64,000 nt of DNA from Macrostomum lignano (lineage: Eukaryota), in the NCBI GenBank assembly GCA_002269645.1, contig NIVC01000922.1, positions 248,001 to 312,000 on the forward strand, given 5' to 3'. Below, one piece after another: positions 14,743-24,400 of the stretch; position 1 is the first letter of the stretch, and each line of letters begins with the position of its first letter. The position numbers were made by a program, and so were the translations under genes. A model generated the notes under the pieces. The model had not been told where the DNA came from, did not search any database, and was given only the letters and a program-made list of their open reading frames with translations.

Positions 14743-15044
14743 ATGTCCGCACTGATCACAGAGCTGCAGACTAGCGGCAAAGAGAAGGACGACCTAATCA
14801 ACGAGTTGCAGCATCAGATTAGCGATTTGAAATCGCAAGTTCGCATGAAAGACAAGCGCATAGCGGAACTATTGTCGCAAGTTGATAAATATCAATCGGT
14901 GATTAATAGCGCCGCCGGGTCGCCAGTGCACACAGCCGCTACGACTGTTAAACGACAACGAGGCGTGGGCATTTCTGCTGAGCCGCAAAATGAACAACTG
15001 GTCTCGCAAATGTCAACGGGGAAAATTGTCCCTAAAGATGCTGG
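14743..15044 (+). CDS. PRKG1: PKG alternative N-terminal exon, I-alpha-like leucine zipper and autoinhibitory segment
   Basis: MSALITELQ...DKYQSVIN...KRQRGVGISAEPQ resembles PKG I-alpha (RAQGISAEPQ). Donor GG|GTGAGT, phase 2, fits the common exon at 22742. AG acceptor immediately upstream (14740-14741). Confidence 0.85.
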
Positions 15045-15094
15045 GTGAGTTTCAGATGTTTTTTTAAAGTTTGAATTATCATATATCAGTTCAT

Positions 15095-15608
15095 CAGTGG
15101 CGTCGCCAGGGGGGCCGGGGGGGGGGAGTGGGAATCGGGATTAGGCGCGGCGGGTACCAAAAACCATGAGGCAATTGAGTGCCTGCGGCGCTAAAATGAG
15201 TGCCTGCGGCGCTAAAATGAGTGCCTGCGGCGCTAAAATGAGTGCCTGCGGCGCCAAAATGAGTGCCTGCGGCGCTAAAATGAGTGCCTGCGGCGCCAAA
15301 ATGAGTGCCTGCGGCGCCAAAATGAGTGCCTGCGGCGCTAAAATGAGTGCCTGCGGCGCTAAAATGAGTGCCTGCGGCGCTAAAATGAGTGCCTGCGGCG
15401 CTAAAATGAGTGCCTGCGGCGCTAAAATGAGTGCCTGCGGCGCTAAAATGAGTGCCTGCGGCGCTAAAATGAGTGCCTGCGGCGCTAAAATGAGCGTCTG
15501 CGGCGCTAAAATGAGCGTCTGCGGCGCTAAAAGTGGCAATGACATGAGGCATGGCCAGCCAGGCCAACCCCCCCCCCCCCCCAATTGAAATTCCTGGCTA
15601 CGCCACTG
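15095..15608. mobile_element. Non-autonomous hAT-type DNA transposon (MITE) with an internal 21-bp minisatellite
   Basis: TIRs CAGTGGCGTCGCCAGG (15095) and CCTGGCTACGCCACTG (ends 15608), 15/16 match. Perfect 8-bp TSD CAGTTCAT at 15087-15094 and 15609-15616. About 17 copies of GTGCCTGCGGCGCTAAAATGA inside; no transposase. Confidence 0.9.
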
Positions 15609-20010: not shown

Positions 20011-21143
20011 TAATTCTGGACGCGTAATTAAAATCAAGAATCTCCAATTTCATATATCTATAAAATATAGATGAGGCTGTACTGTGTACTCATTCTGACT
20101 TTTCACCGTGAGCCCATTTAAATTTCGTGGATTTCTCACAGCTCGCTACCTGAAAGGCAATATGCACTCGTGCGCATCCGCATCCGCTGACGGATGATTG
20201 ACGTGGCTCAAGTGGCTCGCTATAGCGGAGTTCAAGCCGAAGAAGTGATGAAGGCCATGCAGCTCATATCTTATTGAACCGAGCTACTCGTATAAGCTGT
20301 ATCTAGTGTAGGTGAGATTCGAGCACGAAGTCCTGACATAACTTTTTAGAAATTCGAGATAAGAGCTATATACGGTGGATCTTCACGAGTTGGTTAAAGT
20401 GAGGGGTAAATAATATACGGTTTCCCCTAAACATTTATCCACACATTGGGAGCTGAGTGGCTGCCAGCCTGCAGTGCTGAGAGACACCCAACGTCAGAGC
20501 AACTCGTCCAGTCCCACAGAGCAGAAAGAAATTCAATATGCGCAAACGCCTCGAACTGCGTGTTTAGATAAGGCCTCGAACTAAATAGCAAATTGACCTG
20601 CATATCTTAAGGAGGGTGGGGGCAGAAGGGAGCGAGAGGAAGAAGGCCCGACCTCGTCATTGGACTTGGAAGGGAGGCAGGTTGGTTACTGTTAAGGTAG
20701 ATTTTTAGGTATGGGAGAACCTGAGCACAGTGCTGTACCTTGGCTGGTTGGCTAGTTGGACCATGATTTCGCAAGCGCAGTCGTCCAGACACCCCTCTAT
20801 CCCCCCTCCTTTCCTTCCTACTCCCCTCTCCTGCCGATCGACCTCTTCTTCTTCCAGAGTTCTCGCACGGCGTTGAAACATAAATTTTGAGCCATAAAGT
20901 CCGATTATATACATGTACTCCGAAAGCCTTATAACTTAGCTACTTTGGTAATAAAACAATGTGCTAACAACTGAAAGAATATAAATATACAAATAATCTT
21001 CCCTACTCGCAAGAGAAGAGAGAGAGCTTTACTTGCTGATACAGCCTCGTTCGGGCCAACTTCCTTGCCCAAGTGCCACACGAGCTTTCTTGCCAATAAA
21101 CATTCAAATTTAAAACGAAGACTAAATAAAGGAAGTGTAAAGC

Positions 21144-21457
21144 ATGGGCACCCTGCGCGAGCTGCAGCTGGCTTTGCAGCAGAAAATCGAGGAAGTTAAA
21201 CAGCGCGACAGAATCATAGACGAATTAGAGATTGAGCTAGACGTCAAGGACGCCAGGATTGAGCAGCTTCAAGAGGAGGTCGGCCGGCTGCAGTCGTTGC
21301 TGTCTCGCGAACAGCCCGAACGTCACGCTGCTAGCTTGCAGAGCGCCGCTTCGTTTGACCGGCAGCTGGTGCCGCGGACGAAACGGGTAGCGATTAGTGG
21401 CGAATCCTCGGCTGAATTTGCTAATTCCAATGTGAAACCGTGCGAGAAATCAACTAG
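21144..21457 (+). CDS. PRKG1: PKG alternative N-terminal exon, I-beta-like
   Basis: [36 protein letters not shown] closely matches vertebrate I-beta ([36 protein letters not shown]); contains [11 protein letters not shown]; donor AG|GTATAG, phase 2. Confidence 0.92.
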
Positions 21458-24400
21458 GTATAGATTGATTAAAGCTCTGCAGTCACTTGCGATCAGCAAC
21501 TTTTTTAAAGCTTTCTCCAAGCGTTTACTTTCGTTGACTAGTCTCTATCGACCTTCTAGTTCTCACGTGTCTCTTTATGGTCATTCATTCGGGCCGCTGG
21601 GCTCCTTATTGTCCTTAAGAGTGTCTTAAGGTATTCAGTCAGTGTCGATATGGTCTTCAGTTAGGGAATGTCTTTATGGTCCTCAGTTAGTGAATGTCTT
21701 CATGGTCCTCAGTTAGTGAATGTCTTCATGGTCCTCAGTTAGTGAATGTCTTCATGGTCCTCAGTTAGTGAATGTCTTCATGGTCCTCAGTTAGTGAATG
21801 TCTTCATGGTCCTCAGTTAGTGAATGTCTTCATGGTCCTCAGTTAGTGAATGTCTTCATGGTCCTCAGTTAGTGAATGTCTTCATGGTCCTCAGTTAGTG
21901 AATGTCTTCATGGTCCTCAGTTAGTGAATGTCTTCATGGTCCTCAGTTAGTGAATGTCTTCATGGTCCTCAGTTAGTGAATGTCTTCATGGTCCTCAGTT
22001 AGTGAATGTCTTCATGGTCCTCAGTTAGTGAATGTCTTCATGGTCCTCAGTTAGTGAATGTCTTCATGGTCCTCAGTTAGTGAATGTCTTCATGGTCCTC
22101 AGTTAGTGAATGTCTTCATGGTCCTCAGTTAGTGAATGTCTTCATGGTCCTCAGTTAGTGAATGTCTTCATGGTCCTCAGTTAGTGAATGTCTTCATGGT
22201 CCTCAGTTAGTGAATGTCTTCATGGTCCTCAGTTAGTGAATGTCTTCATGGTCCTCAGTTAGTGAATGTCTTCATGGTCCTCAGTTAGTGAATGTCTTCA
22301 TGGTCCTCAGTTAGTGAATGTCTTCATGGTCCTCAGTTAGTGAATGTCTTCATGGACCTCAGTTAGTGAATGTCTTCATAGACCTCAGTTAGTGAATGTC
22401 TTCATGGTCCTCAGTTAGTGAATGTCTTCATGGTCCTCAGTTAGTGAATGTCTTCATGGTCCTCAGTTACTGAATGTCTTCATGGTCCTCAGTTACTGAA
22501 TGTCTTCATGGTCCTCAGTGATTGCCTTTATGATGATCAGCTAGTCAGTGTCTACACGGTTCTCAATTAGTGTGGCTGTATGGGCCTTAGTTATGAGCCT
22601 TTTTATGGTTCTAAATTTGACTCTTTCTGACACTTTATCAATGTAATTTTATTTATTACTGCTAATATCTTAAATTGGTGCTTTACAACCATCATAACTT
22701 AATCACAAAAATTGCACTTAATATTTATTTCAATCTTGCAGAACTCGCGATCTCATTCGTCGAGCTATCCTGGAGAATGCGTTTATGAAAAACCTGGAGA
22801 ATGCTCAGATTAGCGAGATTATCGACTACATGTACCCCATGACTCACAAGACCAATGCGCTCATCATTAAATTGGGCGAGATCGGGTCTCTGGTCTACGT
22901 CATGGAAGGTGAGTCTTCAGCCATTCAGTGATGCCACCCTCTAATCTTCAGTCTCTCAGTGATGCCACCCTTTAATCTTCAGTCTCTCAGTGATGCCACC
23001 CTTTAATCCTCAGCCCTTCAGTGATGCCACCCTCTAATCTTCAGTCTCTCAGTGATGCCACCCTCTAATCTTCAGTCTCTCAGTGATGCCACCCTCTAAT
23101 CTTCAGTCTCTCAGTGGTGCGGTACCCTATTCTTTTACAAGAGTTTTGCTTCAATGTAATTTTTTTCAGAGGGTTCCGCCGAAGTCACGAACACAAAAGG
23201 CGACAAAATCAACGAGATTGGCTCTGGCACAGTGTTCGGAGAGCTGGCTATTCTGTACAATTGCAAGCGGACAGCCACCGTCAAGGGTGAGCATGAAGGG
23301 TGACTGTGCGAACATTGTGAAAGTGAGAGAATGATTTGGATTGACTGACACAGTAAGTAGAAGGTAGAGAAGAGATAGTGGGAGTGAGGCAGATCTCAGG
23401 TAAAGTGAGGTAGAGGAGAGAGAAGTATATTCCAGGTAGAGTGAGCTAGAGGAGAGAGAAGTAGATCCCAGGTAGAGTGAGAGAGAAGTAGATCACAGGT
23501 AGAGTGAGGTAGAGGAGAGAGAAGTAGATCCCAGGTAGAGTGAGAGAGAAGTAGATCACAGGTAGAGTGAGGTAGAGGAGAGAGAAGTAGATCCCAGGTA
23601 GAGTGAGAGAGAAGTAGATCACAGGTAGAGTGAGGTAGAGGAGAGAGAAGTAGATCCCTGGTAGAGTGAGAGAGAAGTAGATCCCAGGTAGAGGAGAGAG
23701 AAGTAGATCACAGGTAGAGTGAGGTAGAGTGAGAGAGAAGTAGATCCCAGGTAGAGTGAGAGAGAAGTAGATCCCTGGTAGAGTGAGAGAGAAGTAGATC
23801 CCAGGTAGAGGAGAGAGAAGTAGATCACAGGTAGAGTGAGGTAGAGTGAGAGAGAAGTAGATCCCAGGTAGAGTGAGAGATAAGTAGATCCCAGGTAGAG
23901 GGGAGAGAAGTAGATCCCAGGTAGACTGAGGTAGAGTGGGATAGAATTAGATCCCACATAGAGTAGATTGGGGTAGAAGTAGATCCCAGATAGAGTAGAT
24001 TGGGGTAGAAGTAGATCCCTACCAGGTAGAGTGAGGTAGTCAGGTATAGGGGAGAGAAGTGGGTCCCAGGTAGAGTGAGGTAGAGTGGAGCACGCTAGAC
24101 AAAAATATGGTTTAGCTAAGGCACACAGAAACAGATTAACCGACTTTACCGGGTGGTAATGAGATAATTCCGTCTTCTATTCGTAAGTTAAAAGGTCAAC
24201 TGGGGAAATTTCGCCCGAGCACGGATCGTTAGGAGGATAATTCTTTTAAGAGGACCACTCCAATGAAGAGCTTCATCACGGGGTGCTGCTTGGTGGTCGA
24301 GAATTTCTCTGGGGATTTTGGCGAGATTTCTAGGGAGGTGGGAGAGCTGGGGTATCGTTCGTGCCTGCCAGGCGTGTGTCAGCCTGCAGTTAAGAAGCAG

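Follow-up and report, generated by a model that had tools for sequence, protein, structure and literature searches.

An alpha/beta pair of alternative exons at the 5' end of a flatworm type I cGMP-dependent protein kinase gene, and its counterparts in other bilaterians

Structure of the gene

We analyzed a stretch of 64,000 nucleotides (nt) from the genome of the flatworm Macrostomum lignano (assembly GCA_002269645.1, contig NIVC01000922.1, positions 248,001 to 312,000 of the forward strand), and this whole stretch is called the window here. It is the locus of GenBank protein PAA74802.1 (P0001, BOX15_Mlig003256g1, 707 amino acids), and it holds a kinase gene whose 5' end carries two alternative exons, an alpha-class exon (1a) and a beta-class exon (1b). 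The gene is a type I cGMP-dependent protein kinase (PKG I), orthologous to vertebrate PRKG1 and insect foraging (for). It encodes two tandem cyclic nucleotide monophosphate (cNMP)-binding domains and then an AGC kinase domain, and the precomputed Pfam matches for the protein are PF00027 and PF00069. Full-length queries retrieved hundreds of PKGs. The top matches are M. lignano proteins, and the identity to PKG 1 or for proteins of molluscs, a brachiopod, insects and vertebrates is 60-65% over the full length.

The region 14000-23500 of the window was inspected directly for exons, splice sites and frames. For the gene model, splice sites were enumerated, and a human PKG I-beta sequence served as a probe only. 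The spliced model has 14 exons, every intron is of the GT-AG type, and the TAA stop codon lies at 39948-39950 (Table 1). The isoform made through exon 1a has 682 amino acids (707 with an upstream coding exon, exon 0), and the isoform made through exon 1b has 686. PAA74802.1 without its first 25 residues is the 682-residue isoform with zero mismatches, so that residues 26-707 match the modelled translation. There is exactly one alpha and one beta exon within the window. The introns around them span 1.3-6 kb, which makes this locus a compact example of the alpha/beta pair.

From its ATG, exon 1a contains 302 nt, or 100 codons plus two bases. It encodes a leucine zipper, ...LSQVDKYQSVI, and the pseudosubstrate KRQRGVGISAEPQ, in which the GISAEPQ motif is present. 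Exon 0 was located by tblastn, in which the 25 N-terminal residues of PAA74802.1 (MSKDKEKKKDRSWSFLAGSGESKVK) match at 100%, and it enters the alpha exon via the acceptor aaacag/A at 14742, one base 5' of the ATG. The initial annotation had treated the alpha-like exon as a first exon. This has to be revised, since the deposited RNA-based model places exon 0 before it and the alpha exon is the second coding exon. Thus, the arrangement is not one in which each alternative exon is a first exon with its own promoter. A comparable N-terminal extension is also found in the Logan transcript P0002 of a close relative and in the paralogue P0004.

Exon 1b has 314 nt (104 codons plus two bases). It begins with MGTLRELQ..., and here too a zipper is followed by a pseudosubstrate. 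The exon sits in an intron, 6.1 kb downstream of the alpha exon. Because an in-frame TAA lies 6 nt 5' of its ATG, translation cannot run into exon 1b from upstream, and the exon has to bring its own start codon. The same TAA bars the joint in-frame inclusion of both alternative exons. The exon coordinates, the phase 2 of both exons onto the same exon 2 and the peptides quoted in the initial annotation were all reproduced. So were the 104 full codons of the I-beta-like exon and the 686-residue isoform, a length that the I-beta proteins of shark, gar and sturgeon share.

Transcript support and the sister copy

RNA-seq and transcriptome assemblies are the only source of the GenBank models for this assembly, with open reading frames called by TransDecoder (PMC5730564). 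The model deposited for the window locus is of the alpha type. A beta-type model, PAA74786.1 (P0121, BOX15_Mlig030852g1, 686 amino acids), is found in the 90% cluster of P0001. It differs from the exon-1b isoform by two substitutions overall, and its exon-1b peptide is identical. This model belongs to a sister copy of the locus (NIVC01000923.1), which is 97.5% identical to window positions 19077-24079 over 5 kb, introns included. The sister contig ends 2 kb upstream of its beta exon and thus has no alpha region, which is a plausible reason why only the beta form was modelled there. Transcription of both exons, on which the initial annotation had made its reading depend, is accordingly borne out in part. 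RNA-derived models of each type exist, but they lie on two near-identical copies and the support is not copy-specific. A second copy is in line with the DV1 assembly as a whole, a large fraction of which is duplicated (PMC5730564).

Exon 1b of the window copy could be an untranscribed relic, with the beta isoform made from the sister copy only, and the alpha-only model at the window locus is what such a relic would leave. We consider this very unlikely. The exon-1b peptide is 100% identical between the two copies, within surroundings that are nearly as similar, and the ATG, the open frame and the phase-2 donor are intact in the window copy. The beta-only model on the sister contig is plausibly explained by the alpha region missing there. 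Moreover, the other two M. lignano paralogues have beta exons with only about 48% protein identity to that of the window, and these keep the ATG, the open frame and the phase-2 donor, which points to long-term constraint. The beta mRNA may start from an intronic promoter or through spliced-leader trans-splicing, a process that acts on 38.8% of M. lignano genes (PMC5730564).

Exon order and splice junction in other animals

The order alpha exon, beta exon, exon 2 was found in the scallop Ylistrum balloti, in the termite Zootermopsis, in a gene model of the fish Amia and in all three M. lignano paralogues (Table 1). In every exon 1 examined, the end falls after the second base of a codon, seven residues ahead of AIL[DE]N.FM. 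Phase-2 ends at this same codon are present in the window, the scallop (3 exons), the termite (2), the alpha exon of the annelid Capitella, both other M. lignano paralogues and the pufferfish beta exon. The intron-position comparison with PRKG1, which the initial annotation had proposed, turned out in its favor at this pufferfish exon. In the paralogue Mlig009136, an exon 0 is also joined to the alpha exon, via ...ttcag/A ATG, as in the window.

For Amia calva, the deposited model P0030 ('KGP1 kinase, partial', 878 amino acids) runs from an I-alpha N-terminus through about 100 filler residues into an I-beta N-terminus. This annotation artefact apparently reads through an intron, and its concatenated form implies that the alpha exon lies upstream of the beta exon in this fish. 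A literature search on how the alpha and beta exons are ordered in the human gene gave nothing usable.

Both isoform classes are annotated within one species, and on the same contig wherever both records list a contig, in five animals: Patella (P0010 beta, P0131 alpha), Zootermopsis (P0061/P0195), Nilaparvata (P0112/P0155), Macrosteles (P0119/P0136) and Tribolium (P0101/P0145). Between its alpha exon and exon 2, the scallop gene carries two beta-class exons in tandem, both with phase-2 donors, and both are absent from P0046, the sole protein model seen for this gene.

Class assignment of the two exons

The class profiles comprise 21 N-termini of the alpha class and 21 of the beta class, and all Macrostomum sequences were left out of them. 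Against the all-taxa profiles, exon 1a scores 67.2 bits for alpha and 41.8 for beta, and exon 1b scores 27.2 bits for alpha and 86.7 for beta. Profiles made from invertebrates only classify the vertebrate forms in the same manner, with 89.8 (alpha) versus 24.9 (beta) bits for Amia I-alpha and 68.3 (alpha) versus 132.7 (beta) bits for vertebrate I-beta. In an unrooted neighbour-joining tree of 48 N-termini (104 columns, Kimura distances, 100 bootstraps), the alpha versus beta split is recovered in 98/100 bootstraps. Flatworm, mollusc, arthropod and vertebrate members stand on either side of this split, and the grouping follows class, not phylum.

When aligned with 47 other N-termini, both flatworm exons fit the pattern of a zipper followed by a pseudosubstrate, ..R/K-R/K-x-x-I-S-A/G-E... 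In the alignment of invertebrate N-termini, the beta class has the motif MGTLR[DE]LQ.AL.EKIEEL.QRD..IDELE.ELD.KD...DKYRSV..P...R[TS]KR.AISAEP and the alpha class the motif ...LDK[FY]QSV[FL]P...PRK.RAQGISAEPQ..[ST]IQ[ED]L...F..... Exon 1b matches the human PKG I-beta zipper (PDB code: 3NMD) with a phmmer E value of 4.8e-12, and residues D26, E27, E29, E31 and D33 are identical. Over the whole exon, its identity to vertebrate I-beta is 52% (84 bits).

A search with the beta-exon profile gave 448 representatives at E <= 1e-3 and 247 at E <= 1e-10, mostly exon-sized fragments. Five proteins (P0301, P0315, P0322, P0341 and P0282) have a near-perfect beta zipper together with strongly diverged cNMP-binding and kinase parts and an altered or absent pseudosubstrate. 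These are probably fast-evolving paralogues. In P0362, P0371, P0263 and P0013 (Littorina), beta-class N-termini carry hundreds of low-complexity residues between the zipper and the pseudosubstrate, and the length of this linker is evidently very elastic.

Other features of the window

Nearly all introns of the kinase gene are packed with minisatellite arrays, with periods of 12-64 nt, up to 80 copies and often >90% identity. One such array lies between the beta exon and exon 2 and comprises 33.5 copies of a 26-mer. This agrees with the report that tandem repeats make up 15% of the M. lignano genome (PMC5730564). Two long open reading frames lie 3' of the kinase gene. A Pfam scan of the other long open reading frames in the window, these two included, gave no match. 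At the corresponding place, the sister copy has a gene of 1152 amino acids, likewise with no Pfam match.

Table 1. Positions of exons and other features, in window coordinates unless another locus is named in the first column; a slash marks the splice site.
Feature	Position	Strand	Details
Coding exon 0 of the alpha-type mRNA	12869-12942	+	74 nt; MSKDKEKKKDRSWSFLAGSGESKV + 2 nt; donor AA/gtgagt
Alpha-class exon 1a	14742-15044	+	internal ATG 14743; donor GG/gtgagt; ends in phase 2
Beta-class alternative first coding exon 1b	21144-21457	+	own ATG 21144; donor AG/gtatag; ends in phase 2
Common exon 2 (start of cGMP-binding domain A)	22742-22908	+	167 nt; acceptor ttgcag/A; used by both alternative exons
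Common exons 3-13, whole span	23170-39950	+	two cNMP-binding domains and kinase domain
Common exons 3-6	23170-23286, 29506-29611, 33123-33359, 34192-34263	+	spliced model
Common exons 7-10	34697-34771, 34874-34961, 37033-37172, 37561-37650	+	spliced model
Common exons 11-13	37831-38259, 39021-39150, 39855-39950	+	spliced model
Minisatellite arrays	13020-13434, 15176-15532, 17053-17582, 18194-18736, 19725-20010, 21650-22519, 22914-23120, 23404-23999		
Minisatellite arrays (continued)	24590-25845, 26190-27201, 27729-29412, 31014-31296, 31697-32586, 34990-36896, 38278-38840, 39176-39828		
Long open reading frame	43559-45268	+	569 amino acids
Long open reading frame	45781-47511	+	576 amino acids
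Scallop Ylistrum balloti (L003)	alpha 5028-5341; beta 27622-27916 and 38597-38895; exon 2 45324		beta exons each with ATG
Termite Zootermopsis (L004)	alpha 5118-5431; beta 57215-57531; exon 2 62555		
M. lignano Mlig017055 (L006)	alpha 20953-21288; beta about 27043-27396; exon 2 28744		
M. lignano Mlig009136 (L007)	alpha about 5701-5962; beta 10418-10750; exon 2 11937		

Discussion

It is very likely, in our judgement, that the window contains the 5' end of the M. lignano PKG I gene and that this gene makes two isoforms by the mutually exclusive use of two anciently duplicated exons. We suggest that the upstream transcript would join coding exon 0 to the alpha-class exon and then to exon 2. In the other transcript, translation would begin at the ATG of the beta exon, within the intron. 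Each alternative exon would supply its own leucine zipper for dimerisation and docking and its own autoinhibitory pseudosubstrate. Both are predicted to join exon 2 in phase 2, giving an identical protein from cGMP-binding domain A onward.

The two N-termini set the docking partners and the cGMP sensitivity of PKG I in mammals. The docking partners there are MYPT1 for alpha and IRAG and TFII-I for beta, and it is the acidic face of the beta zipper that binds IRAG and TFII-I. The strong conservation of this acidic face in the flatworm sequence fits a conserved docking function. By analogy, the two worm isoforms would form separate homodimers and would differ in their docking partners and cGMP sensitivity. 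For mammalian PKG I, it has been described that the zipper mediates homodimerisation and docking, and that the autoinhibitory sequence is responsible for basal inhibition and cGMP sensitivity (PMC10299703).

Several observations weigh against the reading of an ancient exon pair. A search of the PDB with exon 1a returned no I-alpha chain at E <= 10, and its top match is the I-beta zipper 3NMD with E = 0.2. Against Amia I-alpha, exon 1a reaches 32 bits, less than the 41 bits that it reaches against vertebrate I-beta. At the level of sequence, its direct resemblance to vertebrate I-alpha is weak, and its alpha identity is visible only through invertebrate intermediates. Neither flatworm zipper reaches the gathering threshold (35 bits) of Pfam family PF16808 (PKcGMP_CC): the peptide of exons 0 and 1a scores 29.4 bits (E = 5.9e-7, best family) and exon 1b 15.8 bits (E = 0.011), with a model that has 35 positions only and with flatworm zippers that are diverged at ...DKYRSV. 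The tree is a neighbour-joining tree on 104 coiled-coil columns without an outgroup. The beta-type model belongs to the sister copy, and the window locus carries the alpha-type model only. The alpha-then-beta order in vertebrates rests on one concatenated model of Amia, whose gene spans 124 kb.

Furthermore, the pair is not universal in the DNA examined, where Capitella, Lingula and a pufferfish paralogue show one exon type. In Capitella teleta (L001, KB309567.1, 10285-22703), there is an alpha exon, and no beta-like exon was found at E <= 5 in the 12.4-kb first intron or in 10 kb upstream, DNA that includes one 50-N gap. Its lineage may have lost this exon. In Lingula, there is a beta exon and no alpha exon within 10 kb upstream, at a locus with a 2.5-kb N gap, and the pufferfish prkg1-like paralogue has a beta exon and no alpha exon within 10 kb. 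Because the flanks searched were at most 10 kb, these single-exon-type results do not establish loss.

Independent duplications in several phyla would be a case of parallel evolution, as Martinez-Gomez et al. 2021 (NAR 49:8232, PMC8373072) concluded for ACOX1. Coiled-coil sequences converge easily, and the taxa with one exon type would be expected if the duplications were separate events. For the PKG I exons, however, we find this explanation scarcely credible. The phyla have in common the beta motifs (the MGTLR[DE]LQ start and R[TS]KR.AIS) and the alpha motifs (DK[FY]QSV.P and PRK.RAQGISAEPQ, then the ..IQ[ED]L..F tail), the exon order and the same-codon phase-2 junction are identical, and the tree groups the sequences by class, not by phylum.

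There is almost no chance that the pair is a tandem duplicate specific to flatworms in which exon 1b merely converged on the vertebrate I-beta sequence: the best PDB match of exon 1a and the fact that the two exons can be aligned with each other would suit it, but exon 1b shares 50-52% identity with the beta exons of molluscs and vertebrates and 26% with exon 1a, the flatworm-free profiles part the two exons by 25 and 60 bits, the bootstrap split separates the classes, and the same two classes occur in the same order in the scallop and termite genes. The initial annotation had accepted that its reading would fall if both exons clustered together as a lineage-specific duplicate. Instead, 1a and 1b fall into separate classes in both the profiles and the tree.

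We therefore favor an old exon pair. The class profiles, the tree, the exon order and the junction support the view that the alpha/beta pair predates the bilaterian split and is ancestral to bilaterians rather than specific to vertebrates, as the initial annotation had proposed. A further proposal goes beyond this, namely that the pair is a fixed bilaterian architecture with an ancient beta-specific partner already present in the bilaterian ancestor, and that the pair itself is possibly of pre-bilaterian origin. We hold this proposal only tentatively and think it somewhat more likely wrong than right. The beta zipper is kept far more strongly than the alpha zipper (52% flatworm-human identity versus about 35%), and all three Macrostomum paralogues retain both exons.

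The same exon classes, order and splice junction in flatworm, mollusc and insect genes imply that the two-isoform design is ancestral in bilaterians. It would thus belong to the ancestral bilaterian kinase and would not be a refinement made by vertebrates. Simple animals that are ready for transgenesis, M. lignano among them, could then be used to address questions specific to each isoform.

Comparison with known systems

The bilaterian age of the exon pair is not new. Martinez-Gomez et al. catalogued human substitutions derived from tandem exon duplication, including N-terminal events with alternative promoters, and listed PRKG1 as having 'equivalent exons in multiple species' across Bilateria, with Onthophagus taurus as an example (PMC8373072). 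We infer that this PRKG1 event is the alpha/beta pair, in which case the catalogue reached the same evolutionary conclusion in 2021. Its PRKG1 entry is one line, and its main text contains no flatworm and no comparison of exon order or phase. For many insects and molluscs, both isoform types already have RefSeq entries. Both M. lignano isoform types are already in GenBank too, the beta type under the sister copy. The flatworm gene is therefore an additional member of a known alpha/beta pair, and the finding is a correct rediscovery. What our analysis may add is that the exon order and the junction are kept in both Spiralia and Ecdysozoa, the order being in agreement with one gene model of a fish, that both exons are retained in three Macrostomum paralogues, and that an extra coding exon precedes the flatworm alpha exon. 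The flatworms are a phylum for which no earlier discussion of the alpha/beta pair is known, and the window provides a clean and compact example.

The closest known system is the I-alpha/I-beta pair of vertebrate PRKG1, which likewise has two homologous exons, each with a zipper and a pseudosubstrate. As in vertebrates, the flatworm beta exon has 104 codons and gives an isoform of 686 amino acids. Its zipper shares 52% identity with the vertebrate one, and the acidic patch D26/E27/E29/E31/D33 is identical. The same-codon phase-2 junction is shared with the pufferfish beta exon, and the position of alpha upstream of beta is shared with the Amia model. There are also differences. The flatworm alpha exon is preceded by coding exon 0, and its zipper is much diverged from that of vertebrates. 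Where vertebrate I-alpha has the Cys of ...KLHKCQSVLP (Leu in PDB 4R4M), exon 1a has Tyr, and the alpha exons of other invertebrates have Phe or Tyr. If this Cys has a redox role in vertebrate I-alpha, that role would presumably be a vertebrate addition. The pseudosubstrates are GVGISAEPQ and VAISGES in the flatworm versus AQGISAEPQ and QAISAEP in vertebrates. In addition, the flatworm introns are a few kb long and rich in minisatellites, unlike those of vertebrate PRKG1.

Insect foraging genes provide the second comparison. Like the flatworm exons, the RefSeq isoforms of the termite, the beetle and the planthoppers divide into these alpha and beta classes, and the insect alpha forms usually have long extra N-terminal extensions. 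In Drosophila melanogaster, there is a single zipper-bearing N-terminus (P1/P1alpha/P3), and the P2/P4 N-terminus is without the conserved zipper and autoinhibitory sequence (PMC10299703). In the pea aphid, two 5' variants, Apfor1 and Apfor2, have been proven by cDNA. Both variants contain a zipper as well as an autoinhibitory region, and the second has its exons nested in an intron of the first (PMC3667181).

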